Source: Monocercomonoides exilis PA203
Taxonomy: Eukaryota > Protista > Preaxostyla
Assembly: GCA_001643675.2 (NCBI GenBank)
Contig: LSRY02000005.1
Span: 1,054,001-1,118,000 of the forward strand
DNA: 64,000 nucleotides
Reading direction: 5' to 3'
Made by a program: the position numbers and the translations under genes. Shown piece after piece: positions 2,199 through 50,208 of this stretch; positions within the stretch are counted from its first letter, which is position 1; each line of letters starts with the position of its first letter. The notes beneath the pieces were generated by a model. That model saw nothing but the letters and a program-made list of their open reading frames with translations. It had not been told where the DNA came from and made no database searches.

Positions 2199-2427
2199 TT
2201 ATCAAGCGATATTTGACAAAATGTTTTTAGAGTATAAAGTGCGAAGCCTTTAACATTCATCATTTCTATTAATAATGGGTAACTATTGAAATGAAGTTTA
2301 TATGTTCATATTTTTTCTTAATGAGCTATAATATCATTTCATCAATAATGAAAACAAATCCAAAAGAATGAATTTATTATGGTTAAAAAGGACTTTTCCT
2401 TTTGTGAAATAACATTTCAAAATTTGC

Positions 2428-4123: not shown

Positions 4124-4158
<35 letters not shown>

Positions 4159-23235: not shown

Positions 23236-26200
23236 ATGAGTTTTTGCCTGCTGTGCGTTTGCTTCTGTTATTTCTTTATTTTATCGCAAATTGGAGAAAC
23301 ATACAGTTTTGAGCCAAAAATGTTTGAAATTAATTTTGCAAATTTTCTTTCTTCATTGCATCGAATTGTGATTTTTTTTATTGTGATATTTTTTCTGTTT
23401 CACCTTAAAAAGTCACACACCTGAGAACGCTGATGAATTCTATTATGTAAATGAAAATTGTGGAGAAGGCACGGACGACTGCAGTGAGAATTCTCCATGT
23501 TGCAGCTTGACAACTGTTTTCAATAAAAACGGACCATTTTTTGTCAAAATCAACGGAAAAACAACAATAACAGAATCAAAAAATTTCAATTGTGCAGTCA
23601 CTTTATCTGGAGAAAGAGATGCGAGCATTGAAGTCACCGGCTCTGCTTCATCTTTTCCTTCACTTGAGTTCCATTCTGAAACAATGATGAGTAATTTGAT
23701 TATTTTTCTTTCAAGTTTTAGTCCTGACGTAGCTGCATTTATTAAAATGGAAAATGCTTCACTGGAAATGATTGGAGTTGAAATTATTTTGCCAGAGACA
23801 TTTGGAAATTCTCTTTTAGATATTACTGGTGAGAATGCGAATTGCAAATTCGAAAATTTGTCCATAAGACCAAATGATAATTGCTCTGAATTTGGCTCGA
23901 ACACTCCTTGTTCATCTATTTTAACAAATTCGAAAGGGATTATTAATGTGAAATCTTCTTCAATAGCCACTATAACAGAATCAAACTTCGAATTTTTAAA
24001 CCTTCATTCATCGCTTTTCAACATAGAAATGACTAATCAGTTCACCATTTCTAAATCCAATTTTTCTTCTGTTATTTTGAATTTTAAAGAGGAAACTCTT
24101 GGAATTACTGGAAATTGTGGAAGTTGCATCAAATTCACGGGAGGGAAACCGACTGATCCTTTTCTTAGCGTTTCAAATAGCACTTTTCGTAATTGCACCT
24201 TGGCAGAGAATGGGTTAAAAGGAGGTGCATTATATATTGATTTAATGCGTGGAGTCCGCCTTGAGTTAAATTCTTCAACTTTCGAATCATGCAATGCAAA
24301 CTCATCTGAACAGAGCACAAAGGGTGGAGCAATATACTTGAATCTTCAACTAAGATCATTGGATTTTGTATTTAAGAATCTCACATTTGGAATAGGAGAA
24401 AATTCCTGCAGTGCGACAAATGGAATGAATATATTTTTAAAATCTTCTTTGTATAATTTGGTAGCCACCACAGAATATTTCGCTTTTGACATGTCAGAAA
24501 ACGACAACAAAACCAGATATCAGGCTTCACCCGATGATAATACAATCATCTCAATAATTGATTACCTTGCACCAGAAGGCAATGTTTTTTATTTCAATTC
24601 AAATATTACAAATAATAATACAAATTGTGGGACGCAATACAACCCTTGTGGATCAATTATGTATGCATTAAGCAACACTTTTTTGGGAATGTGCGAACGA
24701 GAACTCATACTCATGAATGAATTTGTTCTCAATGAACTCTTAATTTTGACAGATCTTCCTTTTAATGTATGTGGAAACCCCAACGATAATGCCAATTCGA
24801 AAATGAATATAAGAATTACATCGACTGAACAAGATCTAATTCAAGTGACTACGCAGTGCTCCTTTACAAGGCTTGAAATATCCTTTATATCTGATCAAAC
24901 AAGTGATATTTCTTTTATTACATCTGAGGTGAACAATTCAAATAATTACACCTTATCATTTTCTCAGTGCTTGTTTACTCAAGTTCCAGACATAGATACC
25001 ACAGGCTTAACGATAATAACACTCAAAGCCGGAAAGCTTATCTTCCATCAAGTGAATGTCCAAAATTGTTTCATAAAATCATTCTTATCTATGATATCAG
25101 GAACTTTAGCAATTTTATCTGAAAGTCCATCTTCTTTATCAAAAACAAACAACAGTAAAAACGAAGAAATCTCATTTACATTATCATTGACAAATTGTAA
25201 ATATGATAAATATCTTATAAATATCGAAAATATTATTGAAAGCGAAAGAATGGAAATTGACATATCAGACATTCAAATAAAAAATTGCATTTGCACAGGG
25301 GATGATGGGAGTCTTGTGCGTGTATTGAATGCGGATAGTTTCATTATGTTTGGAGCAGCGATTAGTGGAGCTACAGATGAGGAAAGTAATGTGTTGGTGA
25401 GCGGGCGAGGGGTGGAGATTGAGGGATGTGGAAAAGGAAGTGTAACGAACAGCAACTTTACGGGGCTTGTGGTTAAATGCACGGGATTTAGTGGCAGCAG
25501 TTATGAGGAAGCGGGAGGCGGGGGTCTGAAGGCGATTGTGAAGGCGAGGGGAACAGCGACGGCGGCGGCGACGACGATGGGGCGGTTGATGAAAAGAAAC
25601 GGAAATGGGGATACGAGTGGCGAAGGGGCGGGAGAAGAGGCGCTGCTGGCTGTAACGGGGTGCCGATTTGAAGGATGCAAAGTTATTGGAGCAGGGAAGG
25701 ATAAAGCGCTTTTAGTGGGAGGAGGGGTGTGGTGTGTGCTTGGGGAAAAAGGAGATGGTGAAGATAAAGGAGGCGAGATTGAGATTAGGGGATGCGAGTT
25801 TTGCTCGTGCTGGGCGGGGAAGAAGCAGGGTGACGCAGGAACGGAAGAAGATGCCAATAACACTGAGGGTCGAGGAGGAGGGATCTTCTTGGATGTGCAG
25901 AATACAAAGATGAGATTTTATTTGGAGGGTGTTACAAAAGGGGATGAGGGGGGAGACGCGGGAGAGGGGACTGGAGAAGGAACGGAAGAGCCGGTGGTGG
26001 CAAAGAAGGAGCTGTTTGGGGTTGGTGAAGGGGAGGAGTGCTATGCGTTGCACGGTACGAATTTGTTTGTTAGATATCCTGGGAGCGGGGATGGGGAGAG
26101 TTTGAAAGGCAACATATTTGATTTTGATTATGATACGGAAAGAGCGGAGCGGCGGAACGAGATGAAAGGAGGGTATTTTGTGGAAGATGGAGAAGGGGGG

Positions 26201-29200
26201 ATAGCAGACGAGGTGATTGAGTATCTGCTGATACACTTGGTAGATTGGAATGAAAGCGAGGGAGCGTATGTGATGATGGGGAAAAAGGATGGGGAGATTG
26301 AGGTGGGCGGGGAAGATGTTCCGGGATGTGGGAGGAAGTATCTGCCGTGTGCGGGGATTGAGTTTGCGTATGGCAATGCTAAATGGGGTGAAGGCGCTAA
26401 TGATGCGAAGATTGTTCTTTCTGGGGAAGAATATACTATTGGGGAGCCGATTGAGCTTTTGGCAGGAAATGGAGCGAATGGTGTGCGTCCAGGGAAAGTT
26501 ATTATTGATGGGGCAGCAGGAAGTGAAGAGGGGAGTGCAGAAAAAATGAAAGTGATGATTGATATTGAGAGCAAACCAGGAGTCAGCGGAAGGAATGAAG
26601 GAGAGGAAAGCTCTGCGAAGGGGGCGATTACGAGTTACGTTAATTTGGTTATACAGAATGTGAAATTTTCATTGAATAAAGCAGGGAATAAGAGCAGCTG
26701 TGTTGTGTGGAGTGAGGGGGCAGGAGTGAGCCTGAGTGTGGAACATGTAGAGTTTGATGGGACAGAAATTAGCAAAGAGACGATTGGATGGAGAGTGATC
26801 CACTATGAAGGGGGAAGTAATCTGAGCATGAGTGATGTGACGGTCAAGGCAATGAGGCTTTCGAAGAGCATGATTGAATATAAATGCGAAACTAATTTTG
26901 GAGCAGGTGGAGAAGGAGAAGTTGCGGGTTATGTCAATCTGATGGGAGTGAAGATTGATGATTGCAAAGTGAAGGTCAAGGAGGATGGGAATGGTGTGGA
27001 AAATGCGACAGGAAGTAAGGTGTATCTGGTGAAAGTGGAAGGGGGAGAAGGCATAAGTGTAAATATGGAGGGGGTTACTATTACGAAGAGTGTTTCGGAG
27101 GAAGGGTGCGGGAGTCTTGTGCGTGTGGCTAATGTGGGCAGTTTTGTGATGAAGAGAGCAGCGATTAGTGGAGCTACGGAAGGTGGTGATTCTAGTTTTG
27201 TGAGTGGGCGAGGGGTGGAGATTGAGGGATGTGGAAAAGGAAGTGTAACGAACAGCAACTTTACGGGGCTTGTGGTTAAATGCACGGGATTTAGTGGCAG
27301 CAGTTATGAGGAAGCGGGAGGCGGGGGTCTGAAGGCGATTGTGAAGGCGAGGGGAACAGCGACGGCGGCGGCGACGACGATGGGGCGGTTGATGAAAAGA
27401 AACGGAAATGGGGATACGAGTGGCGAAGGGGCGGGAGAAGAGGCGCTGCTGGCTGTAACGGGGTGCCGATTTGAAGGATGCAAAGTTATTGGAGCAGGGA
27501 AGGATAAAGCGCTTTTAGTGGGAGGAGGGGTGTGGTGTGTGCTTGGGGAAAAAGGAGATGGTGAAGATAAAGGAGGCGAGATTGAGATTAGGGGATGCGA
27601 GTTTTGCTCGTGCTGGGCGGGGAAGAAGCAGGGTGACGCAGGAACGGAAGAAGATGCCAATAACACTGAGGGTCGAGGAGGAGGGATCTTCTTGGATGTG
27701 CAGAATACAAAGATGAGATTTTATTTGGAGGGTGTTACAAAAGGGGATGAGGGGGGAGACGCGGGAGAGGGGACTGGAGAAGGAACGGAAGAGCCGGTGG
27801 TGGCAAAGAAGGAGCTGTTTGGGGTTGGTGAAGGGGGAGGAGTGCTATGCGTTGCACGGTACGAATTTGTTTGTTAGATATCCTGGGAGCGGGGATGGGG
27901 AGAGTTTGAAAGGCAACATATTTGATTTTGATTATGATACGGAAAGAGCGGAGCGGCGGAACGAGATGAAAGGAGGGTATTTTGTGGAAGATGGAGAAGG
28001 GGGATAGCAGACGAGGTGATTGAGTATCTGCTGATACACTTGGTAGATTGGAATGAAAGCGAGGGAGCGTATGTGATGATGGGGAAAAAGGATGGGGAGA
28101 TTGAGGTGGGCGGGGAAGATGTTCCGGGATGTGGGAGGAAGTATCTGCCGTGTGCGGGGATTGAGTTTGCGTATGGCAATGCTAAATGGGGTGAAGGCGC
28201 TAATGATGCGAAGATTGTTCTTTCTGGGGAAGAATATACTATTGGGGAGCCGATTGAGCTTTTGGCAGGAAATGGAGCGAATGGTGTGCGTCCAGGGAAA
28301 GTTATTATTGATGGGGCAGCAGGAAGTGAAGAGGGGAGTGCAGAAAAAATGAAAGTGATGATTGATATTGAGAGCAAACCAGGAGTCAGCGGAAGGAATG
28401 AAGGAGAGGAAAAGCTCTGCGAAGGGGGCGATTACGAGTTACGTTAATTTGGTTATACAGAATGTGAAATTTTCATTGAATAAAGCAGGGAATAAGAGCA
28501 GCTGTGTTGTGTGGAGTGAGGGGGCAGGAGTGAGCCTGAGTGTGGAACATGTAGAGTTTGATGGGACAGAAATTAGCAAAGAGACGATTGGATGGAGAGT
28601 GATCCACTATGAAGGGGGAAGTAATCTGAGCATGAGTGATGTGACGGTCAAGGCAATGAGGCTTTCGAAGAGCATGATTGAATATAAATGCGAAACTAAT
28701 TTTGGAGCAGGTGGAGAAGGAGAAGTTGCGGGTTATGTCAATCTGATGGGAGTGAAGATTGATGATTGCAAAGTGAAGGTCAAGGAGGATGGGAATGGTG
28801 TGGAAAATGCGACAGGAAGTAAGGTGTATCTGGTGAAAGTGGAAGGGGGAGAAGGCATAAGTGTAAATATGGAGGGGGTTACTATTACGAAGAGTGTTTC
28901 GGAGGAAGGGTGCGGGAGTCTTGTGCGTGTGGCTAATGTGGGCAGTTTTGTGATGAAGAGAGCAGCGATTAGTGGAGCTACGGAAGGTGGTGATTCTAGT
29001 TTTGTGAGTGGGCGAGGGGTGGAGATTGAGGGATGTGGAAAAGGAAGTGTAACGAACAGCAACTTTACGGGGCTTGTGGTTAAATGCACGGGATTTAGTG
29101 GCAGCAGTTATGAGGAAGCGGGAGGCGGGGGTCTGAAGGCGATTGTGAAGGCGAGGGGAACAGCGACGGCGGCGGCGACGACGATGGGGCGGTTGATGAA

Positions 29201-32200
29201 AAGAAACGGAAATGGGGATACGAGTGGCGAAGGGGCGGGAGAAGAGGCGCTGCTGGCTGTAACGGGGTGCCGATTTGAAGGATGCAAAGTTATTGGAGCA
29301 GGGAAGGATAAAGCGCTTTTAGTGGGAGGAGGGGTGTGGTGTGTGCTTGGGGAAAAAGGAGATGGTGAAGATAAAGGAGGCGAGATTGAGATTAGGGGAT
29401 GCGAGTTTTGCTCGTGCTGGGCGGGGAAGAAGCAGGGTGACGCAGGAACGGAAGAAGATGCCAATAACACTGAGGGTCGAGGAGGAGGGATCTTCTTGGA
29501 TGTGCAGAATACAAAGATGAGATTTTATTTGGAGGGTGTTACAAAAGGGGATGAGGGGGAGACGCGGGAGAGGGGACTGGAGAAGGAACGGAAGAGCCGG
29601 TGGTGGCAAAGAAGGAGCTGTTTGGGGTTGGTGAAGGGGAGGAGTGCTATGCGTTGCACGGTACGAATTTGTTTGTTAGATATCCTGGGAGCGGGGATGG
29701 GGAGAGTTTGAAAGGCAACATATTTGATTTTGATTATGATACGGAAAGAGCGGAGCGGCGGAACGAGATGAAAGGAGGGTATTTTGTGGAAGATGGAGAA
29801 GGGGGATAGCAGACGAGGTGATTGAGTATCTGCTGATACACTTGGTAGATTGGAATGAAAGCGAGGGAGCGTATGTGATGATGGGGAAAAAGGATGGGGA
29901 GATTGAGGTGGGCGGGGAAGATGTTCCGGGATGTGGGAGGAAGTATCTGCCGTGTGCGGGGATTGAGTTTGCGTATGGCAATGCTAAATGGGGTGAAGGC
30001 GCTAATGATGCGAAGATTGTTCTTTCTGGGGAAGAATATACTATTGGGGAGCCGATTGAGCTTTTGGCAGGAAATGGAGCGAATGGTGTGCGTCCAGGGA
30101 AAGTTATTATTGATGGGGCAGCAGGAAGTGAAGAGGGGAGTGCAGAAAAAATGAAAGTGATGATTGATATTGAGAGCAAACCAGGAGTCAGCGGAAGGAA
30201 TGAAGGAGAGGAAAGCTCTGCGAAGGGGGCGATTACGAGTTACGTTAATTTGGTTATACAGAATGTGAAATTTTCATTGAATAAAGCAGGGAATAAGAGC
30301 AGCTGTGTTGTGTGGAGTGAGGGGGCAGGAGTGAGCCTGAGTGTGGAACATGTAGAGTTTGATGGGACAGAAATTAGCAAAGAGACGATTGGATGGAGAG
30401 TGATCCACTATGAAGGGGGAAGTAATCTGAGCATGAGTGATGTGACGGTCAAGGCAATGAGGCTTTCGAAGAGCATGATTGAATATAAATGCGAAACTAA
30501 TTTTGGAGCAGGTGGAGAAGGAGAAGTTGCGGGTTATGTCAATCTGATGGGAGTGAAGATTGATGATTGCAAAGTGAAGGTCAAGGAGGATGGGAATGGT
30601 GTGGAAAATGCGACAGGAAGTAAGGTGTATCTGGTGAAAGTGGAAGGGGGAGAAGGCATAAGTGTAAATATGGAGGGGGTTACTATTACGAAGAGTGTTT
30701 CGGAGGAAGGGTGCGGGAGTCTTGTGCGTGTGGCTAATGTGGGCAGTTTTGTGATGAAGAGAGCAGCGATTAGTGGAGCTACGGAAGGTGGTGATTCTAG
30801 TTTTGTGAGTGGGCGAGGGGTGGAGATTGAGGGATGTGGAAAAGGAAGTGTAACGAACAGCAACTTTACGGGGCTTGTGGTTAAATGCACGGGATTTAGT
30901 GGCAGCAGTTATGAGGAAGCGGGAGGCGGGGGTCTGAAGGCGATTGTGAAGGCGAGGGGAACAGCGACGGCGGCGGCGACGACGATGGGGCGGTTGATGA
31001 AAAGAAACGGAAATGGGGATACGAGTGGCGAAGGGGCGGGAGAAGAGGCGCTGCTGGCTGTAACGGGGTGCCGATTTGAAGGATGCAAAGTTATTGGAGC
31101 AGGGAAGGATAAAGCGCTTTTAGTGGGAGGAGGGGTGTGGTGTGTGCTTGGGGAAAAAGGAGATGGTGAAGATAAAGGAGGCGAGATTGAGATTAGGGGA
31201 TGCGAGTTTTGCTCGTGCTGGGCGGGGAAGAAGCAGGGTGACGCAGGAACGGAAGAAGATGCCAATAACACTGAGGGTCGAGGAGGAGGGATCTTCTTGG
31301 ATGTGCAGAATACAAAGATGAGATTTTATTTGGAGGGTGTTACAAAAGGGGATGAGGGGGAGACGCGGGAGAGGGACTGGAGAAGGAACGGAAGAGCCGG
31401 TGGTGGCAAAGAAGGAGCTGTTTGGGGTTGGTGAAGGGGAGGAGTGCTATGCGTTGCACGGTACGAATTTGTTTGTTAGATATCCTGGGAGCGGGGATGG
31501 GGAGAGTTTGAAAGGCAACATATTTGATTTTGATTATGATACGGAAAGAGCGGAGCGGCGGAACGAGATGAAAGGAGGGTATTTTGTGGAAGATGGAGAA
31601 GGGGGATAGCAGACGAGGTGATTGAGTATCTGCTGATACACTTGGTAGATTGGAATGAAAGCGAGGGAGCGTATGTGATGATGGGGAAAAAGGATGGGGA
31701 GATTGAGGTGGGCGGGGAAGATGTTCCGGGATGTGGGAGGAAGTATCTGCCGTGTGCGGGGATTGAGTTTGCGTATGGCAATGCTAAATGGGGTGAAGGC
31801 GCTAATGATGCGAAGATTGTTCTTTCTGGGGAAGAATATACTATTGGGGAGCCGATTGAGCTTTTGGCAGGAAATGGAGCGAATGGTGTGCGTCCAGGGA
31901 AAGTTATTATTGATGGGGCAGCAGGAAGTGAAGAGGGGAGTGCAGAAAAAATGAAAGTGATGATTGATATTGAGAGCAAACCAGGAGTCAGCGGAAGGAA
32001 TGAAGGAGAGGAAAGCTCATGAAGGGGGCGATTACGAGTTACGTTAATTTGGTTATACAGAATGTGAAATTTTCATTGAATAAAGCAGGGAATAAGAGCA
32101 GCTGTGTTGTGTGGAGTGAGGGGGCAGGAGTGAGCCTGAGTGTGGAACATGTAGAGTTTGATGGGACAGAAATTAGCAAAGAGACGATTGGATGGAGAGT

Positions 32201-35200
32201 GATCCACTATGAAGGGGGAAGTAATCTGAGCATGAGTGATGTGACGGTCAAGGCAATGAGGCTTTCGAAGAGCATGATTGAATATAAATGCGAAACTAAT
32301 TTTGGAGCAGGTGGAGAAGGAGAAGTTGCGGGTTATGTCAATCTGATGGGAGTGAAGATTGATGATTGCAAAGTGAAGGTCAAGGAGGATGGGAATGGTG
32401 TGGAAAATGCGACAGGAAGTAAGGTGTATCTGGTGAAAGTGGAAGGGGGAGAAGGCATAAGTGTAAATATGGAGGGGGTTACTATTACGAAGAGTGTTTC
32501 GGAGGAAGGGTGCGGGAGTCTTGTGCGTGTGGCTAATGTGGGCAGTTTTGTGATGAAGAGAGCAGCGATTAGTGGAGCTACGGAAGGTGGTGATTCTAGT
32601 TTTGTGAGTGGGCGAGGGGTGGAGATTGAGGGATGTGGAAAAGGAAGTGTAACGAACAGCAACTTTACGGGGCTTGTGGTTAAATGCACGGGATTTAGTG
32701 GCAGCAGTTATGAGGAAGCGGGAGGCGGGGGTCTGAAGGCGATTGTGAAGGCGAGGGGAACAGCGACGGCGGCGGCGACGACGATGGGGCGGTTGATGAA
32801 AAGAAACGGAAATGGGGATACGAGTGGCGAAGGGGCGGGAGAAGAGGCGCTGCTGGCTGTAACGGGGTGCCGATTTGAAGGATGCAAAGTTATTGGAGCA
32901 GGGAAGGATAAAGCGCTTTTAGTGGGAGGAGGGGTGGTGTGTGCTTGGGGAAAAAGGAGATGGTGAAGATAAAGGAGGCGAGATTGAGATTAGGGGATGC
33001 GAGTTTTGCTCGTGCTGGGCGGGGAAGAAGCAGGGTGACGCAGGAACGGAAGAAGATGCCAATAACACTGAGGGTCGAGGAGGAGGGATCTTCTTGGATG
33101 TGCAGAATACAAAGATGAGATTTTATTTGGAGGGTGTTACAAAAGGGGATGAGGGGGGGAGACGCGGGAGAGGGACTGGAGAAGGAACGGAAGAGCCGGT
33201 GGTGGCAAAGAAGGAGCTGTTTGGGGTTGGTGAAGGGGAGGAGTGCTATGCGTTGCACGGTACGAATTTGTTTGTTAGATATCCTGGGAGCGGGGATGGG
33301 GAGAGTTTGAAAGGCAACATATTTGATTTTGATTATGATACGGAAAGAGCGGAGCGGCGGAACGAGATGAAAGGAGGGTATTTTGTGGAAGATGGAGAAG
33401 GGGGATAGCAGACGAGGTGATTGAGTATCTGCTGATACACTTGGTAGATTGGAATGAAAGCGAGGGAGCGTATGTGATGATGGGGAAAAAGGATGGGGAG
33501 ATTGAGGTGGGCGGGGAAGATGTTCCGGGATGTGGGAGGAAGTATCTGCCGTGTGCGGGGATTGAGTTTGCGTATGGCAATGCTAAATGGGGTGAAGGCG
33601 CTAATGATGCGAAGATTGTTCTTTCTGGGGAAGAATATACTATTGGGGAGCCGATTGAGCTTTTGGCAGGAAATGGAGCGAATGGTGTGCGTCCAGGGAA
33701 AGTTATTATTGATGGGGCAGCAGGAAGTGAAGAGGGGAGTGCAGAAAAAATGAAAGTGATGATTGATATTGAGAGCAAACCAGGAGTCAGCGGAAGGAAT
33801 GAAGGAGAGGAAAGCTCTGCGAAGGGGGCGATTACGAGTTACGTTAATTTGGTTATACAGAATGTGAAATTTTCATTGAATAAAGCAGGGAATAAGAGCA
33901 GCTGTGTTGTGTGGAGTGAGGGGGCAGGAGTGAGCCTGAGTGTGGAACATGTAGAGTTTGATGGGACAGAAATTAGCAAAGAGACGATTGGATGGAGAGT
34001 GATCCACTATGAAGGGGGAAGTAATCTGAGCATGAGTGATGTGACGGTCAAGGCAATGAGGCTTTCGAAGAGCATGATTGAATATAAATGCGAAACTAAT
34101 TTTGGAGCAGGTGGAGAAGGAGAAGTTGCGGGTTATGTCAATCTGATGGGAGTGAAGATTGATGATTGCAAAGTGAAGGTCAAGGAGGATGGGAATGGTG
34201 TGGAAAATGCGACAGGAAGTAAGGTGTATCTGGTGAAAGTGGAAGGGGGAGAAGGCATAAGTGTAAATATGGAGGGGGTTACTATTACGAAGAGTGTTTC
34301 GGAGGAAGGGTGCGGGAGTCTTGTGCGTGTGGCTAATGTGGGCAGTTTTGTGATGAAGAGAGCAGCGATTAGTGGAGCTACGGAAGGTGGTGATTCTAGT
34401 TTTGTGAGTGGGCGAGGGGTGGAGATTGAGGGATGTGGAAAAGGAAGTGTAACGAACAGCAACTTTACGGGGCTTGTGGTTAAATGCACGGGATTTAGTG
34501 GCAGCAGTTATGAGGAAGCGGGAGGCGGGGGTCTGAAGGCGATTGTGAAGGCGAGGGGAACAGCGACGGCGGCGGCGACGACGATGGGGCGGTTGATGAA
34601 AAGAAACGGAAATGGGGATACGAGTGGCGAAGGGGCGGGAGAAGAGGCGCTGCTGGCTGTAACGGGGTGCCGATTTGAAGGATGCAAAGTTATTGGAGCA
34701 GGGAAGGATAAAGCGCTTTTAGTGGGAGGAGGGGTGTGGTGTGTGCTTGGGGAAAAAGGAGATGGTGAAGATAAAGGAGGCGAGATTGAGATTAGGGGAT
34801 GCGAGTTTTGCTCGTGCTGGGCGGGGAAGAAGCAGGGTGACGCAGGAACGGAAGAAGATGCCAATAACACTGAGGGTCGAGGAGGAGGGATCTTCTTGGA
34901 TGTGCAGAATACAAAGATGAGATTTTATTTGGAGGGTGTTACAAAAGGGGATGAGGGGGGAGACGCGGGAGAGGGGACTGGAGAAGGAACGGAAGAGCCG
35001 GTGGTGGCAAAGAAGGAGCTGTTTGGGGTTGGTGAAGGGGAGGAGTGCTATGCGTTGCACGGTACGAATTTGTTTGTTAGATATCCTGGGAGCGGGGATG
35101 GGGAGAGTTTGAAAGGCAACATATTTGATTTTGATTATGATACGGAAAGAGCGGAGCGGCGGAACGAGATGAAAGGAGGGTATTTTGTGGAAGATGGAGA

Positions 35201-38200: not shown

Positions 38201-41200
38201 AAGAAACGGAAATGGGGATACGAGTGGCGAAGGGGCGGGAGAAGAGGCGCTGCTGGCTGTAACGGGGTGCCGATTTGAAGGATGCAAAGTTATTGGAGCA
38301 GGGAAGGATAAAGCGCTTTTAGTGGGAGGAGGGGTGTGGTGTGTGCTTGGGGAAAAAGGAGATGGTGAAGATAAAGGAGGCGAGATTGAGATTAGGGGAT
38401 GCGAGTTTTGCTCGTGCTGGGCGGGGAAGAAGCAGGGTGACGCAGGAACGGAAGAAGATGCCAATAACACTGAGGGTCGAGGAGGAGGGATCTTCTTGGA
38501 TGTGCAGAATACAAAGATGAGATTTTATTTGGAGGGTGTTACAAAAGGGGATGAGGGGGGACGCGGGAGAGGGGACTGGAGAAGGAACGGAAGAGCCGGT
38601 GGTGGCAAAGAAGGAGCTGTTTGGGGTTGGTGAAGGGGAGGAGTGCTATGCGTTGCACGGTACGAATTTGTTTGTTAGATATCCTGGGAGCGGGGATGGG
38701 GAGAGTTTGAAAGGCAACATATTTGATTTTGATTATGATACGGAAAGAGCGGAGCGGCGGAACGAGATGAAAGGAGGGTATTTTGTGGAAGATGGAGAAG
38801 GGGGATAGCAGACGAGGTGATTGAGTATCTGCTGATACACTTGGTAGATTGGAATGAAAGCGAGGGAGCGTATGTGATGATGGGGAAAAAGGATGGGGAG
38901 ATTGAGGTGGGCGGGAAGATGTTCCGGGATGTGGGAGGAAGTATCTGCCGTGTGCGGGGATTGAGTTTGCGTATGGCAATGCTAAATGGGGTGAAGGCGC
39001 TAATGATGCGAAGATTGTTCTTTCTGGGGAAGAATATACTATTGGGGAGCCGATTGAGCTTTTGGCAGGAAATGGAGCGAATGGTGTGCGTCCAGGGAAA
39101 GTTATTATTGATGGGGCAGCAGGAAGTGAAGAGGGGAGTGCAGAAAAAATGAAAGTGATGATTGATATTGAGAGCAAACCAGGAGTCAGCGGAAGGAATG
39201 AAGGAGAGGAAAGCTCTGCGAAGGGGGCGATTACGAGTTACGTTAATTTGGTTATACAGAATGTGAAATTTTCATTGAATAAAGCAGGGAATAAGAGCAG
39301 CTGTGTTGTGTGGAGTGAGGGGCAGGAGTGAGCCTGAGTGTGGAACATGTAGAGTTTGATGGGACAGAAATTAGCAAAGAGACGATTGGATGGAGAGTGA
39401 TCCACTATGAAGGGGGAAGTAATCTGAGCATGAGTGATGTGACGGTCAAGGCAATGAGGCTTTCGAAGAGCATGATTGAATATAAATGCGAAACTAATTT
39501 TGGAGCAGGTGGAGAAGGAGAAGTTGCGGGTTATGTCAATCTGATGGGAGTGAAGATTGATGATTGCAAAGTGAAGGTCAAGGAGGATGGGAATGGTGTG
39601 GAAAATGCGACAGGAAGTAAGGTGTATCTGGTGAAAGTGGAAGGGGGAGAAGGCATAAGTGTAAATATGGAGGGGGTTACTATTACGAAGAGTGTTTCGG
39701 AGGAAGGGTGCGGGAGTCTTGTGCGTGTGGCTAATGTGGGCAGTTTTGTGATGAAGAGAGCAGCGATTAGTGGAGCTACGGAAGGTGGTGATTCTAGTTT
39801 TGTGAGTGGGCGAGGGGTGGAGATTGAGGGATGTGGAAAAGGAAGTGTAACGAACAGCAACTTTACGGGGCTTGTGGTTAAATGCACGGGATTTAGTGGC
39901 AGCAGTTATGAGGAAGCGGGAGGCGGGGGTCTGAAGGCGATTGTGAAGGCGAGGGGAACAGCGACGGCGGCGGCGACGACGATGGGGCGGTTGATGAAAA
40001 GAAACGGAAATGGGGATACGAGTGGCGAAGGGGCGGGAGAAGAGGCGCTGCTGGCTGTAACGGGGTGCCGATTTGAAGGATGCAAAGTTATTGGAGCAGG
40101 GAAGGATAAAGCGCTTTTAGTGGGAGGAGGGGTGTGGTGTGTGCTTGGGGAAAAAGGAGATGGTGAAGATAAAGGAGGCGAGATTGAGATTAGGGGATGC
40201 GAGTTTTGCTCGTGCTGGGCGGGGAAGAAGCAGGGTGACGCAGGAACGGAAGAAGATGCCAATAACACTGAGGGTCGAGGAGGAGGGATCTTCTTGGATG
40301 TGCAGAATACAAAGATGAGATTTTATTTGGAGGGTGTTACAAAAGGGGATGAGGGGGGAGACGCGGGAGAGGGGACTGGAGAAGGAACGGAAGAGCCGGT
40401 GGTGGCAAAGAAGGAGCTGTTTGGGGTTGGTGAAGGGGAGGAGTGCTATGCGTTGCACGGTACGAATTTGTTTGTTAGATATCCTGGGAGCGGGGATGGG
40501 GAGAGTTTGAAAGGCAACATATTTGATTTTGATTATGATACGGAAAGAGCGGAGCGGCGGAACGAGATGAAAGGAGGGTATTTTGTGGAAGATGGAGAAG
40601 GGGGATAGCAGACGAGGTGATTGAGTATCTGCTGATACACTTGGTAGATTGGAATGAAAGCGAGGGAGCGTATGTGATGATGGGGAAAAAGGATGGGGAG
40701 ATTGAGGTGGGCGGGGAAGATGTTCCGGGATGTGGGAGGAAGTATCTGCCGTGTGCGGGGATTGAGTTTGCGTATGGCAATGCTAAATGGGGTGAAGGCG
40801 CTAATGATGCGAAGATTGTTCTTTCTGGGGAAGAATATACTATTGGGGAGCCGATTGAGCTTTTGGCAGGAAATGGAGCGAATGGTGTGCGTCCAGGGAA
40901 AGTTATTATTGATGGGGCAGCAGGAAGTGAAGAGGGGAGTGCAGAAAAAATGAAAGTGATGATTGATATTGAGAGCAAACCAGGAGTCAGCGGAAGGAAT
41001 GAAGGAGAGGAAAGCTCTGCGAAGGGGGCGATTACGAGTTACGTTAATTTGGTTATACAGAATGTGAAATTTTCATTGAATAAAGCAGGGAATAAGAGCA
41101 GCTGTGTTGTGTGGAGTGAGGGGGCAGGAGTGAGCCTGAGTGTGGAACATGTAGAGTTTGATGGGACAGAAATTAGCAAAGAGACGATTGGATGGAGAGT

Positions 41201-44200
41201 GATCCACTATGAAGGGGGAAGTAATCTGAGCATGAGTGATGTGACGGTCAAGGCAATGAGGCTTTCGAAGAGCATGATTGAATATAAATGCGAAACTAAT
41301 TTTGGAGCAGGTGGAGAAGGAGAAGTTGCGGGTTATGTCAATCTGATGGGAGTGAAGATTGATGATTGCAAAGTGAAGGTCAAGGAGGATGGGAATGGTG
41401 TGGAAAATGCGACAGGAAGTAAGGTGTATCTGGTGAAAGTGGAAGGGGGAGAAGGCATAAGTGTAAATATGGAGGGGTTACTATTACGAAGAGTGTTTCG
41501 GAGGAAGGGTGCGGGAGTCTTGTGCGTGTGGCTAATGTGGGCAGTTTTGTGATGAAGAGAGCAGCGATTAGTGGAGCTACGGAAGGTGGTGATTCTAGTT
41601 TTGTGAGTGGGCGAGGGGTGGAGATTGAGGGATGTGGAAAAGGAAGTGTAACGAACAGCAACTTTACGGGGCTTGTGGTTAAATGCACGGGATTTAGTGG
41701 CAGCAGTTATGAGGAAGCGGGAGGCGGGGTCTGAAGGCGATTGTGAAGGCGAGGGGAACAGCGACGGCGGCGGCGACGACGATGGGGCGGTTGATGAAAA
41801 GAAACGGAAATGGGGATACGAGTGGCGAAGGGGCGGGAGAAGAGGCGCTGCTGGCTGTAACGGGGTGCCGATTTGAAGGATGCAAAGTTATTGGAGCAGG
41901 GAAGGATAAAGCGCTTTTAGTGGGAGGAGGGGTGTGGTGTGTGCTTGGGGAAAAAGGAGATGGTGAAGATAAAGGAGGCGAGATTGAGATTAGGGGATGC
42001 GAGTTTTGCTCGTGCTGGGCGGGGAAGAAGCAGGGTGACGCAGGAACGGAAGAAGATGCCAATAACACTGAGGGTCGAGGAGGAGGGATCTTCTTGGATG
42101 TGCAGAATACAAAGATGAGATTTTATTTGGAGGGTGTTACAAAAGGGGATGAGGGGGAGACGCGGGAGAGGGGACTGGAGAAGGAACGGAAGAGCCGGTG
42201 GTGGCAAAGAAGGAGCTGTTTGGGGTTGGTGAAGGGGAGGAGTGCTATGCGTTGCACGGTACGAATTTGTTTGTTAGATATCCTGGGAGCGGGGATGGGG
42301 AGAGTTTGAAAGGCAACATATTTGATTTTGATTATGATACGGAAAGAGCGGAGCGGCGGAACGAGATGAAAGGAGGGTATTTTGTGGAAGATGGAGAAGG
42401 GGGATAGCAGACGAGGTGATTGAGTATCTGCTGATACACTTGGTAGATTGGAATGAAAGCGAGGGAGCGTATGTGATGATGGGGAAAAAGGATGGGGAGA
42501 TTGAGGTGGGCGGGGAAGATGTTCCGGGATGTGGGAGGAAGTATCTGCCGTGTGCGGGGATTGAGTTTGCGTATGGCAATGCTAAATGGGGTGAAGGCGC
42601 TAATGATGCGAAGATTGTTCTTTCTGGGGAAGAATATACTATTGGGGAGCCGATTGAGCTTTTGGCAGGAAATGGAGCGAATGGTGTGCGTCCAGGGAAA
42701 GTTATTATTGATGGGGCAGCAGGAAGTGAAGAGGGGAGTGCAGAAAAAATGAAAGTGATGATTGATATTGAGAGCAAACCAGGAGTCAGCGGAAGGAATG
42801 AAGGAGAGGAAAGCTCTGCGAAGGGGGCGATTACGAGTTACGTTAATTTGGTTATACAGAATGTGAAATTTTCATTGAATAAAGCAGGGAATAAGAGCAG
42901 CTGTGTTGTGTGGAGTGAGGGGGCAGGAGTGAGCCTGAGTGTGGAACATGTAGAGTTTGATGGGACAGAAATTAGCAAAGAGACGATTGGATGGAGAGTG
43001 ATCCACTATGAAGGGGGAAGTAATCTGAGCATGAGTGATGTGACGGTCAAGGCAATGAGGCTTTCGAAGAGCATGATTGAATATAAATGCGAAACTAATT
43101 TTGGAGCAGGTGGAGAAGGAGAAGTTGCGGGTTATGTCAATCTGATGGGAGTGAAGATTGATGATTGCAAAGTGAAGGTCAAGGAGGATGGGAATGGTGT
43201 GGAAAATGCGACAGGAAGTAAGGTGTATCTGGTGAAAGTGGAAGGGGGAGAAGGCATAAGTGTAAATATGGAGGGGGTTACTATTACGAAGAGTGTTTCG
43301 GAGGAAGGGTGCGGGAGTCTTGTGCGTGTGGCTAATGTGGGCAGTTTTGTGATGAAGAGAGCAGCGATTAGTGGAGCTACGGAAGGTGGTGATTCTAGTT
43401 TTGTGAGTGGGCGAGGGGTGGAGATTGAGGGATGTGGAAAAGGAAGTGTAACGAACAGCAACTTTACGGGGCTTGTGGTTAAATGCACGGGATTTAGTGG
43501 CAGCAGTTATGAGGAAGCGGGAGGCGGGGGTCTGAAGGCGATTGTTAAAACTGGAAAAACAGAGGAAAATCTTGTTAAAATGTGTGAGTTTAGTAATAAA
43601 AATCTAATTAATATTGATAAAGATTTTGAACAATTGATTGTTGAAGGATGTCAATTTGAAAATTGTGAAGCTGTTGATTCTGATGAAAGAGATATGGTAT
43701 TGGTGGGAGGTGGATTTTATTGTTGCATTTGCGGAGAGGAAAGTTGTTATAATTCATTTGAAAATGCCGATAATTATAAGTTATTATTTAGCAATTTGAT
43801 TTTTAAGGAATGTAGTCTTTTAAAAGAAGGAAGCAAAGGTGGTGGAATATATGTTCATAATTTGGAAAATCTTCCGATGAAAATGGATATGAGAGTTAGC
43901 GATATGAATAATTGCATTGATAACAAAGCCACATTCGGATCAGTGATGTTTCTATCTGCAAAAGATTTAAGTGAGATTGTGAAATCAACAACGTTTAACT
44001 TTCTTGCTAGCGGAGCAAACATTGATGAATTTCTTGGAAGTGAATTAATAAATGATCCAGATGTGGATGCTGTTCCATTATTTGCATTTACGTTGGGAAC
44101 ATTTAGTAACAGCAGTATTGATGATAATGGAATAGATAATTATATTTGTGGATATCAAAAATATCCATGCGCTTCAATAAATCGAGCAATTGAGAAAGCC

Positions 44201-47200
44201 AAAGGCAATTCAAAAAGAGTTTGTAAAATACTCAACAAGTCAAGTGTGGAAAAGAAAATATCACTTGAATATTCAGCTTATCAATGCTCTATTGAAGGAA
44301 CAGATAGATCAAAAAGCACATTGACTACAAAAGATGATGCAGATTTCCAAGGAAAATCGGCATTTGAGATTATTACAAAGATATCGTTTAAGACATTACG
44401 GGTTTTGTTAAAGAGCCACAATTCGATTTATAGTTTCACAACAGTTAATGGAGGGAATTTGGAATATAGTAGTTGTTCAATATCAAACAATGCGCCAAGA
44501 GAATCGTTGAATTATCCATTTCTGAATATGATAAATGGAAATGTTACATTTAGTTATGTTTCATTAAGCGATTTGAATTATCAGGATGCAAGCTTTCTGA
44601 TTGCTGGACACGAAGATCAGCAAAATGATGAAACTATTCGCATTTCATTGAGTTATACAAACATTTCAAAGTCAAATGCAAATGGTTGTGATGGTTTTCT
44701 TCATGTTGTTAATATCAGAAGCTTTACTGTGAATAGATGTAACTTCAACAATGTGAATTTGAGTTGCCCATTGATTGCAATGAATAACATTTCAGCAGGT
44801 TCTGTATCTTATTCGAATTTTACACAAATTAAAAGCAGTGGGACTCATGGAGGTTGCGTAGCAATGAAAAAGCTAAATGATAACCAACAAGATCAGTCAT
44901 TAAACTTTAGCCAAGTTAGATTCAACAGCGTTAATGTTGATGGTTCAGAAAGCCAAGGAGGCTCCATGTATTTGGCATTGGACAACAAAATGAAGTTGCT
45001 GATAAACAATTCAGCTTTCTCATCTTCAAGCGCAAACTTGTCAAATGGACGAGGAGGAGCTTTGCTGTTGAATCTTCTGCCGCCGTTTGTTGGAAGTTAT
45101 TTATTGTCCTCACCAACGTTCAAATTCAATAGTGCGAAATGCGGAAGAGATGTTTTTGTGTATGCAACACGACTGAGCACAGGCGCTGTAATGAGCTGGT
45201 TCGACTTCTCGTTTTTTGATGGATATGATCAGAAGAATGCTCTTTACGGGGCTGATGCTTTGGATTTGAAAGATGTTGATCTGTTTGATTTGTGGGAGCA
45301 AAAATCGTCAGTTGTGATTATTGCAGATGATGGAATTGACTCAAAACTTTGCGGTACTACAAATATCCCTTGTAAAAGCTTTTCTGATGCTTTAAGTCGT
45401 CTTGAAGGTGATGACAAATATGTTCAAATCAGCGGGAAATGCTATATCACCAGCTCTAATGATGTATCTGGAACAACTATTCAACCTCATAATGAAGATT
45501 CTTCTCAATCTCCTGGAACTAAGCAAATAACTTTGGTTTTAAAAGGAAATGAAAGTGTAGAAATTACCACAGGATTGCTGTGTAATTCAAAATTCTTTTC
45601 ATTGCAAAATGCTTCTCTGCACATTACGAGAGAATTGGCTTGTGGGGCAGTTATCGACTCTGCAAAAGGACACGTACAGCTCACGTCAGTTGAATTGGCA
45701 TATGAAGAAACAGAACAAGCTGCTAATACGCTTTTGAAAAGGTCCACGAATGATCCTTTCCAAATTACTATGAACATATTACTAATTGAAGGAGGCGATT
45801 TAACGATAAGCGAATTTCGAATGAATGGATTGATTTTTGCAGTTAGTCCAATTGTGTTGAATCAAAAATGCGGGAACGTGTCAATTTCCTCAATGTCCGT
45901 GAAAGACACTGTCATAAATGATATTGAAAAATCTTTCTGTTCTGTCGCAACTCCAAGTGATAGAAGCCCAACAGATGAAAAAATCAATTTCTCTTTGTCT
46001 CATTCTTCTTTTGCAAATCTTTCACGTAGCCTTTCAGAAGTGGTAACAACAAAACAAAACAGTGAGACTCAAAGTGCACCGCTTGTGTTCTCTTTTACTG
46101 ATCCTTCTCCTTCTCCTTCGGAAGATGAGAATGATGCGAGCGATGACCCACAGACAGACGATGCGGAGAAATTCCCAGTCGTTGCGATAAAGAATTGCAC
46201 GTTTGTGTGCCCCGAGCAAAAGGATAGTACTTCGTTTATTTGTGTCAGCAATTCTGCTGCGTCATTTACTTTTTGCACTTTCGATGCCAATGTACCTTCT
46301 GAGCCTGAATCTCTGAAACAGCTTTCTCTCTCTTCAAGATTATCAAATTCAATTTTAAAATACTCATCAAAGGCAAATTCAAAAGCAAATTCTGGGCAAT
46401 TAATCTCAAACGAAGATTTCTGCAGCTGGAACGGTTCGCTTCTTAAATTCACACAGGCAAACGGAACTGTAACAGAAACAGTGTTTGCTGGAACAACAAA
46501 TGGTGCTGTTTGTGTAGACGGAGGAAATATTAGTTTTTCTGAATGCAAGTTTACAAACAATACGATATCATCCTCGTTGTATCCATCAGCAAGAAGAAAT
46601 CTAAAATGTTCTAACAAAGCTATTGTGACTCTTTCGAGCTTAAAGGGAGGCGATGGCTTTAGTAAAACAGATCCGCTTTGGATTCTTAATGATGGATGCG
46701 AATTAAATGGAATTCCAAGCGAAAGGAATTCATCATTATTTGTCCCTACTGTTACATCGTTTACGAATAAAACAGATAACACAAATTACAAACTGACATT
46801 CAAAGGAACTTATTTATTCCCTTGTGATCTTGCTTATCACGTGAAGGTTGAGTATATTCAAGAGAAAGAACAAGAAGAACAACAGGAGCAAAAAGAAGAA
46901 GATCCAAATGCTCATCCGACAACCATCACAGATTTCTCTTTCAGTGCTTTCGTATCTGAATCAGAAGTTGTCGGCCAAATTCCAAAAAGTGTGATAGACG
47001 ATGCTGAGTACCAAGATGAAATAACAGTATGGTTCTCGTATGAAAAGGGCGACGTGAGCAAAACCAGATCAATAACGTCCTCATTGATTCTTAAGAATTG
47101 GACATATCCCCCACAACCAGGACCTGAAGATCCATATGAGAGAATTGCCAAAATGTCGTCGCAGATAAAGAATATCGTAATTGCTCTTGCTGTTGTGTTT

Positions 47201-48361
47201 GTTATTGCTGCTCTAATTGTGATTGTGCTTGTGATATGTGCGTTGCGCTATAAGAAGCAAAGAAATCTGATCAAGCAAGAAAAACTGAAAACAGACGACA
47301 CAATGAAAGTGGTAATGTCAACGCATTCGTCGTATGGCACGATTCGCCCAGAGATTGCGCCACCAGAAAATACATACTCCAGCGTATCTCAGCTTCCGTT
47401 GCTTGAAGCTGATGAAATGGACGATGAAGATGAATATGATTCATCATATGCATATGACAATGAAGAAGAAAGTGAAGAAGACAATACCTTTATGGGCGGA
47501 TTGAGATTGGAGAGCGTAAAGGCAGAACCTGTTCACTCATTAAAAGCAGACGATTCAGTAGTAACTTCGTCAGATATTTCTTCGTCTTCATCATCTGCTG
47601 TGGATGAAGAACCTTTGATGGCTCTTCCACCGAAGTCTAGCTCAGCTCTTCCGGTACCAGTAGCACCACCACGATTTACAACACCATCGGATCTGCTTGT
47701 GACCGTCATGCCAACAGTTTCACCATTTACATTGACGACTGTCAGTGCACAGTCTTCTTTGTACTCCTTCTTGTTCTCTTCGGCCTCAAACGCAGCAAAG
47801 GAAGAAGAAGCAATTCCCGGAAAGCGCCAAACAGCTGCTAAACCTGAACTTGCTCCAGATGAGGTGATGGGTGTGGTGCTGTCGATTATTAATGGGCTGA
47901 CACACTTGAACGAGATCAAAGACCCGCAACTGGGAATGATATACGGTCAGCTGTCTCCGATGTCCGTGTATCTTGGAGGAGCTAACAAGCGTCAGGTGTT
48001 TTTGGCTGTTCAGAACATTCCTCAAATAGAAACGCTTCGATGGGTTGCGCCTGATGTGAATGAGGATGGCGTTGGAACAGAGCAGAGCTCAGTATTTTCT
48101 TTGGGACTGCTTATGTATGCGATGCTGTTTGGACAGATGCCTTTCGAAGATATGAACCCTGTTGAAGCGTCGCTTGCAATTGCTGCTGGCAAACGTCCCG
48201 ACATCTCTGGAGCTTTTGACTCAACATTGACACAACTGTTGATGGAATGCTGGCAAAAGAGTGCACAAAAACGCCCGTCCTTGCGTGAGTTGGAATCTAC
48301 GTTGCGCATGATTATCCAACTTTATTCACAAGAAAATGAAGCAACCGAAACAGCAGACTGA
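23236..48361 (+). CDS. Giant single-pass receptor-like protein: signal peptide, beta-helix/Pmp-like Cys-rich ectodomain with 10 tandem 601-aa units, TM helix, truncated TK/TKL pseudokinase. The frame is broken nearly always by small indels in G-runs.
   Basis: Signal exon MSFCLLCVCFCYFFILSQIG, then intron 23322-23412 (GTTTGA..AAAAAG, phase 2) joins the 23507 frame. Motifs: GGA(I/L)Y, GGGIF, FxxC and CGxxxxPC. TM IVIALAVVFVIAALIVIVLVICAL at ~47174-47245. The C-terminus has RWVAPD..SSVFSLGLLMY..PF..ECW..KRPS. Confidence 0.85.
25398..43545 (+). repeat. Coding tandem array, ~10.1 copies of a 1,803-bp G/A-rich unit
   Basis: The anchor GAGCAGCGATTAGTGGAGCTAC recurs 11 times at ~1.8-kb spacing (~25353 to ~43359). 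The first period is exactly 1803 bp (25501 to 27304). Confidence 0.97.
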
Positions 48362-49213: not shown

Positions 49214-49454
<241 letters not shown>

Positions 49455-50208
49455 TGTTTTTGTTTTTATTTATTTTATTTTATTTTATTTTTTTTTTTTT
49501 TGTTGGCTTTCACCAAAAATCATTCAACTTCTTTAAACTTTAAATCGAAATTAAAATAGTCCAAATTAAAATCGAAAAAACAAAGTTTATATATTTAAAT
49601 TTTTTTCTCTTGTGAAAGTTTTGGAGATTGTTGTGATTTAACTGTTGATAATGATATTTATTTATTAAGTGATAATGTTTTTCTTTTATTTTGAACAGCT
49701 GTTTTCAATTATTTTGAATGATGTTCATTGATCCTTTTTTCATTTTGAAAATTGAAAATGTTTTATTAAGTCTGTTTCAAATGCAATAAACAATATCTGA
49801 AACGTTTCGTATCAAATAAATGAGATTGATTACTGTATTTTTGTGCTAAAAACAAGATTAATAACGATCCTATCTTTTTTATTTTTTGCAAAAATAACTT
49901 ATTATTTCCTGTGCACATGTGAAGTGTTTTCAATAAATCAATTTAATCCAATATACGCAATTGCACACAACAAAACACCACAAAAACGTTTAAAAACTTT
50001 TTTTCTGAATGAAATTTACAATTTCTTTGATCATTTTGTATAGAAAAATTACTGACATGAGAATAAATTTCAAAAGTTTATGGATTTTTTTTTTGGATTA
50101 TTGTATTTATAATTTTGAACGATATATTTTTTATTTCAAATCTGACTGTTTCGATATTGAATAATTTTCAGATTAACTCATCAAACAAATACTGATAATT
50201 AAAAATAA

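Follow-up and report, generated by a model that had tools for sequence, protein, structure and literature searches.

A putative giant beta-helix surface receptor gene with a ten-fold array of 601-aa units in Monocercomonoides exilis

Introduction

Monocercomonoides exilis is a mitochondrion-less gut flagellate that serves as a model eukaryote without mitochondria. One locus of its genome carries about ten near-identical units of 601 aa between a signal-peptide-like start and a kinase-like tail, and its reading frame is interrupted many times within these units. The locus therefore raises the question of whether it is a single gene, and what kind of protein such a gene would encode. An earlier note on this DNA had proposed one gene for a surface receptor of ~8,300 aa, in which the repeated units hold a distal sensing or adhesive head far from the cell and a dead kinase signals inside it. 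We analyzed the locus in a window of 64,000 nt (contig LSRY02000005.1, positions 1,054,001 to 1,118,000), and all coordinates given below are those of this window.

Results

Organization of the locus

From the ATG at 23236 to the stop codon at 48361, the locus comprises 25,035 nt after removal of a putative 91-nt intron, corresponding to 8,344 codons plus the stop, which matches the size proposed earlier when the frame breaks are set aside. The parts that had been assigned to one gene, from signal exon to tail, are present in order (Table 1), but in this assembly the array lacks a continuous open frame. The single-gene reading holds only if the array frame breaks are assembly errors; with this proviso, the locus is likely one M. 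exilis gene. Note that all searches and structure models used in-frame pieces, with the exons and the ~20 frame pieces left unjoined.

Table 1. Features of the locus (window coordinates).
Feature	Position	Strand	Remarks
Putative exon 1	23236..23321	+	ATG and hydrophobic, signal-peptide-like start; 28 codons + 2 nt, phase 2
Putative GT-AG intron, 91 nt	23322..23412	+	GT donor, pyrimidine tract, AG acceptor; removal restores the main frame
N-terminal module ("head")	23413..24505	+	Two GGA[IL] motifs
First capped module	24506..26206	+	Cap at 24626; N-terminal half unique, C-terminal half repeat sequence
Near-identical tandem array	25403..43529	+	10.05 periods of ~1803 nt; ~20 frame pieces
Sole complete in-frame 601-aa unit	33405..35207	+	Modelled piece, 33411-35207
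Last, hybrid unit	42410..44026	+	Repeat up to 43529, unique beyond
Unique capped module, ~400 aa	44027..45229	+	Cap at 44147; GGS and GGA motifs
Last capped region	45230..47173	+	Cap at 45350; juxtamembrane domain from ~46385 at its end
Transmembrane helix	47174..47245	+	24 hydrophobic residues, then basic stop-transfer
Acidic, Ser-rich cytoplasmic linker	47246..47854	+	Predicted disordered; no Pfam match
Kinase C-lobe remnant (helices E to I) and stop	47855..48361	+	Pfam match 48032-48304

Exon 1 has an open frame from the ATG onwards; the main ORF, open from 23387, lies in a different frame. A close paralog in the same genome (hereafter the C49 paralog) retains the same ATG and exon 1, and the sole 1-nt indel between the two genes in this 5' stretch falls inside the putative intron. 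Introns of M. exilis are canonical GT-AG introns with a mean length of ~120 nt. The comparison with the paralog is no proof of the intron because exon 1, intron and upstream region are all ~95% identical between the two genes; both the splicing of exon 1 and the signal peptide are predicted.

The CGx4PC caps pointed out earlier were confirmed in the modules, as were GG[AGS][ILV] motifs, with two GG motifs per module. On the other hand, the distinct distal head was not borne out and was rejected as a candidate, since the N-terminal stretch of 373 aa is one more module of the type seen throughout the family. Its residues 140-360 have matching modules at over 100 paralogous loci in this genome, and the module shares 92% identity with its counterpart in the C49 paralog. 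At the opposite end, the unique ~400-aa module has BLAST-level matches in many family relatives, and the family-conserved juxtamembrane domain (residues ~1350-1640 in the frame that starts at 42338) matches more than 130 fetched family proteins with 31-38% identity.

The tandem array

The 1.8-kb period exceeds the maximum of Tandem Repeats Finder (500), and a repeat search combined with a script was used instead. Solid identity extends over 18,127 nt, equivalent to 10.05 periods of 1803 nt. Unit starts lie 1798-1804 nt apart, and 10-11 copies are in register. Substitutions are absent from the nine interior units except for a single small cluster in the unit that begins at 31715. The complete in-frame unit is exactly 601 aa long, the unit length given in the earlier note. 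The perfect identity of the copies may partly be a consensus artefact. The coding strand of the array is G-rich, with a GC skew of ~+0.6 and, in the interior, 301 runs of at least four G and no such run of C. Periodic 167-aa antisense ORFs were dismissed as a by-product of this C-poor strand.

An older gene model from the 454 assembly, MONOS_10584 (2150 aa), corresponds to this gene with ~1.3 units and is its collapsed-array version; this model was not found in the supplementary material that we looked up. The M. exilis nanopore (ONT) assembly comprises 82,301,135 bp in 101 contigs (PMC8767320, Table 1).

Frame breaks and copy number

The reading frame switches ~20 times between 27874 and 42338. 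The array contains ~28 one- or two-base indels, almost all of them in G4-G6 runs, namely ~18 copy-specific indels and a G5 that replaces G6 at all ten later unit junctions and puts a TAG directly behind the unit. If the junction G5 were true, translation would be limited to the first 1.5 units at most. It is conceivable that the locus is a real pseudogene with genuine frameshifts, whose array expanded before the gene died, or a gene that was never translated past the first junction. This reading would account for the same -1 change and immediate TAG at every junction after the first, and for the ~20 frame pieces. It would also fit the database record, in which MONOS_10584 occurs only in the old EukProt set and is absent from the NCBI models returned. 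For the C-terminal part of the gene, the current NCBI protein set returned no model of 1,090-3,470 aa, which tells against the one-gene reading. However, the spectrum of changes is unlike natural decay, as the ~28 indels stand against roughly zero substitutions across 16.2 kb. The breaks lie in G runs and become more frequent with run length: 10 of 11 copies have G5 in place of the junction G6, and another G6 is shortened in six of nine copies. Neither the 10.5 kb of unique flanks (4.5 and 6 kb, both fully open) nor the edge copies contain any break, and in the C49 paralog the same junction is read through in an intact frame of 2679 aa. The dN/dS between the two genes is 0.43-0.62, and on this sequence comparison both are under purifying selection. 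Furthermore, the authors of the assembly stated that multi-copy regions are less well polished. We therefore consider a dead gene quite unlikely, and regard unpolished nanopore homopolymer errors as the likely cause of the frame breaks and a better fit than decay.

Even with a living gene, the unit count of ten may be wrong because the read N50 of the assembly is 8.9 kb and the identical array is 18.1 kb long. The gene would then be real and its ten-fold array an assembly estimate, with a true number that differs, is possibly much lower, or varies among the cells of the culture; the ~1.3 units in the 454 assembly and the two units of the C49 paralog point in the same direction. Against this, 454 assemblies usually collapse identical repeats, and long-read assemblers collapse them more often than they expand them. 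In addition, the contig runs through the array without interruption and has the correct unique sequence at either end of it, and multi-copy near-identical blocks also occur in other family members. We judge a wrong count to be rather improbable.

Fold of the repeated unit

One unit (33411-35207) was modelled with AF2, and the model was compared by VIA-align and Foldseek. The model has a pLDDT of 73.7 and a pTM of 0.82. In VIA-align, it reached Z scores of 25.3 to 9ozl_B and 24.8 to 2pyg_A; matches to beta-helix proteins had Z scores of 21-25 over 290-350 aligned residues at 3-4.4 Å rmsd with 5-13% sequence identity, and included AlgE4, RbmB, PL6 lyases and tailspikes (Z ~25). Foldseek returned beta-helix proteins only. 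The 601-aa unit thus models as a right-handed parallel beta-helix, and the beta-helix proposed in the earlier note stood up to structure prediction. By sequence, two of 45 family modules matched PF13229 (Beta_helix) or PbH1, with a best E of 2.9e-4, and the repeated unit matched neither; the PDB sequence-profile search gave only a dextranase (E 0.085). Pfam returned nothing on the N-terminal ORF or the repeated unit, and NCBIfam gave only scattered chance matches on the 45 modules.

The same predicted fold and N-terminal cap-then-helix layout are found in the AlgE4 A-module, RbmB, PL6 alginate lyases, phage tailspikes, NosD and the pneumococcal adhesin PfbA. Unlike in those proteins, ~14 modules are chained here on a eukaryotic membrane anchor, and the unit has no Pfam match. 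In the 45-module alignment, the invariant or near-invariant columns are Gly, Cys and Ala only, with no conserved acidic or basic column suggesting catalysis; a catalytic site could be missed because the mean identity of this alignment is 15%. The conserved Gly, Cys and Ala columns likewise give no positive sign of ligand binding.

The motifs could suggest a kinship with chlamydial polymorphic membrane proteins (Pmps; PF02415, TIGR01376), perhaps through acquisition from bacteria. Pmps are likewise beta-helical surface proteins with GGA(I/L/V) and FxxN-like tetrapeptides, and GG[AGS][ILV], FxxC and FxxN-like tetrapeptides do lie near the C-terminal end of each module here. The density of these motifs is however far lower, with only two GG motifs per 350-600 aa, and PF02415 and the POMP repeat (TIGR01376) gave no match at E ≤ 0.1 in the gene pieces or at E ≤ 0.05 in the 45 family modules (Pfam, NCBIfam). 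An autotransporter beta-barrel was not found at the C-terminus, which instead consists of the transmembrane helix, the disordered linker and the kinase C-lobe. The gene has a putative eukaryotic signal exon and intron, and the protein would have a eukaryotic type I membrane topology. The sampled top 150 relatives were all from oxymonads. Descent from a Pmp-type adhesin was thus rejected for want of any HMM support, and we consider it extremely improbable.

The cytoplasmic kinase remnant

In the tail, PF07714 matched with an E of 6.5e-15, covering profile positions 167-258 of 258 only, and PDB kinases aligned solely to tail residues 250-350. Subdomains VIII-XI (APE to helix I) of the C-lobe were detected. 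In none of nine proteins did a kinase-profile match begin before position 155-167, where the N-lobe would lie. An alignment of five tails contained no Gly-rich loop, VAIK, HRD or DFG, and HRD and DFG were absent at their expected places upstream of the APE-like motif. The structure model of the tail has a pLDDT below 50 for residues 1-192, helices at 196-362 and no N-lobe sheet, and Foldseek aligned it with TK/TKL kinases over ~170 columns. The profile matches and the model support a catalytically dead, C-lobe-only kinase remnant, so that the dead half-kinase of the earlier note was retained. All eight other members tested (five M. exilis paralogs and three Blattamonas proteins) have C-lobe-only tails; compared with the tails of 19 further members, which are highly uniform, the tail of this gene has an identity of only 23-27%.

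Membership in an oxymonad family

The relatives of the gene carry MONOS_* names, and family members include MONOS_955, MONOS_5407, MONOS_9641 and BLNAU_15988. The M. exilis genome has more than 100 family loci. A profile built from the 45 modules matched 578 cluster representatives at E ≤ 1e-30, and the sampled top matches were oxymonad proteins in 20 of 20 cases. The gene is an extreme new member of the oxymonad "tyrosine kinase" family, which is the largest that M. exilis has (PMC6759080); the locus is therefore not the isolated undescribed system for which it had seemed the best candidate. Existing annotation of the family already includes proteins of 7.7-8.0 thousand aa. Karnkowska et al. 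2019 (PMC6759080) and Treitli et al. 2021 (PMC8767320) present its members purely as kinases (PTK/TKL), with no mention of the ectodomain, and we found no paper on Monocercomonoides together with pseudokinase, beta-helix or adhesin.

Family members in M. exilis and Blattamonas share the capped beta-helix modules, the juxtamembrane domain, a single transmembrane helix, the C-lobe-only tail and giant size. A typical member is built of 3-5 modules, each 350-400 aa long and dissimilar to the others, whereas here one 601-aa block occurs ten times at ~100% identity. The C49 paralog holds two units against ten in this gene, and some other members carry near-identical tandem blocks of their own. Such changes in the copy number of whole blocks fit unequal crossing-over, as had been proposed.

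Discussion

Taken together, we think that the locus is probably best explained as one gene for an ~8,300-aa surface receptor with a role in adhesion or recognition, whose frame breaks are nanopore errors. The protein would be a type I surface glycoprotein that begins with a signal peptide, followed by a row of ~14 right-handed beta-helix modules that each start with a disulfide-type CGx4PC cap. Ten of these modules would stem from a single 601-aa block through very recent amplification by unequal recombination, and the frame breaks among them would be homopolymer errors that remained because polishing with short reads fails in multi-copy sequence. Next would come the family-conserved juxtamembrane domain, a single transmembrane helix, an acidic linker that is disordered, and the dead C-lobe remnant, which would act as a docking scaffold rather than an enzyme. 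As a putative adhesion or recognition receptor, the protein may bind extracellular ligands, probably glycans, through its beta-helix chain, for example on prey bacteria or in the mucus of the gut. With the identical block, the protein would gain reach (~6-7 nm per module), ten identical binding faces, or both, and a role as a spacer or multivalent adhesin is plausible.

Extender regions of bacterial RTX adhesins, such as that of MpIBP with its ~120 identical repeats, offer a comparison. In these extenders and in the fungal Hil/Awp beta-helix adhesins (PMC8746771), near-identical tandem copies likewise set adhesin length and change by recombination; unlike in those systems, the repeat here is a 601-aa beta-helix instead of a ~100-aa Ig-like domain or a short Ser/Thr repeat, and there is no homology. 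Entamoeba TMKs and plant RLK pseudokinases also form big families, whose members combine a large, variable ectodomain with one transmembrane helix and a cytoplasmic domain derived from a kinase. To our knowledge, they retain the whole bilobal kinase fold even if dead, whereas only the C-lobe is detectable here; in place of Cys-rich or LRR repeats, the ectodomain of the present protein is a chain of beta-helices. We tentatively suggest, as a possibility that we hold to be doubtful, that the oxymonad family is a distinct receptor class combining a beta-helix chain with a C-lobe-only pseudokinase. This gene would then show how the class changes rapidly: unequal crossing-over would add or remove whole 601-aa blocks, and cells or strains would come to differ in their reach or in their avidity for glycans of bacteria or the host.

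Annotation misses such genes because the ONT assembly breaks them at G runs. The largest M. exilis family, recorded as "tyrosine kinases", would consist of giant beta-helix surface proteins with a non-catalytic half-kinase, and its members can grow by amplification of whole domains. Kinome counts would accordingly include many oxymonad "kinases" that are unable to phosphorylate. If the copy number truly varies, the gene would provide a convenient marker and would be suited to testing how a gut protist tunes its surface.

Gene structure and tandem array

The locus, in the window G000:C47:1,054,001-1,118,000, had been read in the earlier note as one gene. A hydrophobic exon of 28 codons begins with the ATG at 23236, in a frame differing from that of the main ORF, and the putative intron listed below restores the frame in phase 2; introns of M. 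exilis are canonical GT-AG introns with a mean length of ~120 nt (PMC8767320). This ATG is kept in the contig 49 paralog, MONOS_9739, and the sole indel between the two paralogs in the 5' stretch falls inside the putative intron. With the putative intron removed, the gene measures 25,035 nt from ATG to stop (8,344 codons).

Features of the window and the closest paralog (window coordinates unless a contig is named)
Feature	Position	Strand	Remarks
WD40-repeat protein	4812-12743	-	2643 aa
ORF	15773-18178	+	801 aa; no Pfam match
Putative intron	GT at 23322, AG at 23411-23412		91 nt
Open frame 5' of array interior	23387-27874		1496 codons
Tandem array	25403-43529		18,127 nt; 10.05 periods of 1803 nt
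Capped modules (n = 13)	caps at 24626; ten canonical positions 26258 to 42461; 44147; 45350
Open frame, 3' flank of array	42338-48358		2007 codons
Juxtamembrane domain	~46385-47173
Transmembrane helix	47174-47245
ORF	53008-54219	-	403 aa; no Pfam match
HSP90	54801-57038	+	PF00183, E 3e-227
MONOS_9739	G000:C49:478000-487900 (1092-9128 of extracted locus L046)	-	intact 2679-aa frame

Successive units of the array start 1798-1804 nt apart. The nine interior units differ by 18 indels of one or two bases; the only substitutions among them form a small cluster in the unit that starts at 31715. The coding strand has a very high G content (GC skew ~+0.6), the array interior having 301 runs of four or more G and none of four or more C, and the encoded unit contains 18% Gly and 12% Glu. 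An antisense ORF of 167 aa with a TTG start occurs once per unit (27874-42777, minus strand); these ORFs were rejected as genes, since they result from the scarcity of C on the coding strand. The register of the array begins and ends in mid-module, as would be expected from unequal crossing-over between neighbouring homologous modules. The copy number of ten is uncertain because the identical sequence extends over 18 kb and the read N50 is 8.9 kb, and in the 454-era model of the same gene, MONOS_10584 (2150 aa), the array is collapsed to ~1.3 units. Just downstream of the gene, an AT-rich spacer (23% GC) carries a (TTA)n microsatellite of ~92 copies (49216-49489).

Origin of the frame breaks

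The single-gene reading does not hold for the array as assembled, which is not one ORF: ~20 shorter frame pieces lie between the 1496- and 2007-codon frames. The unit junctions (26174-42404) each carry a run of G. In the first copy, from 26174, this run is G6 and the frame continues; the ten copies after it all have G5, and there the shorter run brings a TAG immediately after the unit. Such breaks could reflect either decay of the gene or errors in the consensus. Across 16 kb of the array there are ~28 indels and ~0 substitutions, and an indel-only spectrum is typical of R9.4 nanopore consensus, not of natural decay. The breaks are located in G runs and their frequency rises with run length: of the two G6 runs, one is short in 10 of 11 copies and the other in 6 of 9, compared with only one or two of nine copies for runs of G4-5. 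Frame breaks are absent from the unique coding flanks (10.5 kb) and from the edge copies of the array, which carry a few private differences. Furthermore, the same junction is read through in the uninterrupted frame of the contig 49 paralog, and the authors of the source assembly (Oxford Nanopore, 82,301,135 bp, 101 contigs; PMC8767320, Table 1) remark that Nanopolish and Pilon polish multi-copy regions less well (PMC8767320). On these grounds we read the breaks as consensus errors, which is an argument rather than a proof. The earlier observation is largely correct, although the assembly presents the locus in damaged form. We also observed that the homopolymer under-call at unit junctions is systematic; it probably affects other multi-copy genes of this Nanopore assembly and their annotation. 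All searches and folds were run on in-frame pieces of the gene.

Fold of the ectodomain modules

Each module starts with a CGx4PC cap, continues in a cap-helix-then-strands pattern and ends with two GG[AGS][ILV] motifs in FxxC and FxxN-like contexts; with the N-terminal module, the gene has 14 modules. A structure was predicted for one unit (33411-35207) from an alignment of 45 module sequences, drawn from this gene and from 20 paralogous loci. The AF2 model is a ladder of short strands (pLDDT 73.7, pTM 0.82), and all its Foldseek matches are right-handed beta-helix proteins (best E 4.8e-4). VIA-align gave Z 25.3 against RbmB (319 residues, 3.7 A), Z 24.8 against the AlgE4 A-module (324 residues, 3.1 A) and Z 21-23 against PL6 lyases, NosD, tailspikes and the adhesin PfbA, supporting the proposal that the unit is a beta-helix. 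On the other hand, the suggested kinship with chlamydial Pmp adhesins was not recovered, as Pmp/POMP HMMs had no match in the gene pieces or the 45 modules; PF13229 matches 2 of the 45. Only Gly, Cys and Ala columns are conserved in the module alignment, so that there is no sign of a catalytic site. The low-confidence regions of the unit model, namely the Gly/Glu-rich insertions and the last 40-90 residues, resemble flexible linkers, suggesting that beads on a string may describe the ectodomain better than a single rigid rod. The head, thought to be unique, is not: modules that match these N-terminal 373 aa occur at over 100 loci in the genome. The juxtamembrane domain is common to more than 130 fetched family proteins. 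Each unit has 6 N-glycosylation sequons, and the unique parts have 15-23.

Kinase remnant in the cytoplasmic tail

The tail matches PF07714 at profile positions 167-258 only, and alignment with PDB kinases is confined to tail residues 250-350. Its AF2 model begins with 190 disordered residues; helices E to I come next, and an N-lobe sheet is missing. In Foldseek the model finds TK/TKL kinases over ~170 columns. The Gly-rich loop, VAIK, HRD and DFG are all absent from an alignment of five tails, which agrees with the dead half-kinase proposed previously. The same truncated match (positions 155-258) occurs in four paralogs from M. exilis and in three proteins of Blattamonas nauphoetae. Judging from these sequences, the half-kinase arose before the two genera separated and has been conserved, which favours a non-catalytic role. 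The tails of 19 paralogs on many contigs (last 310 aa) are nearly identical to one another, unlike their ectodomain modules (15-20% identical); the tail of the present gene is only 23-27% identical to them and therefore belongs to a separate tail lineage. Complete kinases (profile positions 2-258) also occur in the genome, some within very long frames. Open frames of 6,905 and 5,951 aa contain complete domains (positions 28-255) at G000:C52:244016-244684 and G000:C23:935922-936590, respectively, and are other giant kinase-bearing genes.

Proposed function

The analysis shows the architecture, a predicted fold and a kinase that has lost its catalytic parts. Beyond this, we infer that the product would be a type I surface glycoprotein. 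If stretched, its chain of beta-helices could reach a length of roughly 90-100 nm, assuming about a dozen rungs of 0.48 nm in each of the 14 modules. The ten identical modules would provide reach, or else ten identical binding faces. Glycans of prey bacteria or host mucus are the probable ligands, glycans being the usual partners of the beta-helix fold, and the C-lobe remnant may dock an active kinase or adaptor.

Closest paralog and gene family

MONOS_9739 has two units, compared with ten here, and is 92% identical to the present gene in the head and 66-77% elsewhere. The homology ends ~100 aa before the membrane, beyond which the transmembrane helix of MONOS_9739 differs and its tail is short, basic (Lys/Arg-rich) and devoid of the kinase remnant, indicating that it is a mosaic gene. 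Between the paralogs, dS is 0.11-0.35 and dN/dS 0.43-0.62; the array units, by contrast, are identical to one another, which places their amplification long after the duplication of the gene.

A search of the genome with the tail found over 100 loci, located where frames of 2,200-4,400 aa end. A profile of the 45 modules, run against a library of 1.84 billion proteins, matched 4,617 cluster representatives at E<=1e-3, 1,508 at E<=1e-10 and 578 at E<=1e-30. All of the top 20 matches, which were looked up, belong to M. exilis or Blattamonas, including MONOS_955, 5407, 336 and 9641 (7.7-8.0 thousand aa) and BLNAU_15988 (6,570 aa); the close protein relatives of the gene are all named MONOS_*. Near-identical internal blocks are present in MONOS_9641 (period ~1,470-1,550 aa), BLNAU_15988 (769 aa) and BLNAU_16048 (~920-940 aa), indicating that block amplification recurs in two genera. 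In the literature this family is reported as the largest of M. exilis, given as '332 protein tyrosine kinases, 320 TKL' (PMC6759080), and it is noted to overlap with 'unclassified repeats' (PMC8767320); descriptions of its ectodomain and truncated kinase were not found in the literature. The gene in the window is an extreme, recently amplified member of an annotated family that is poorly covered in print.
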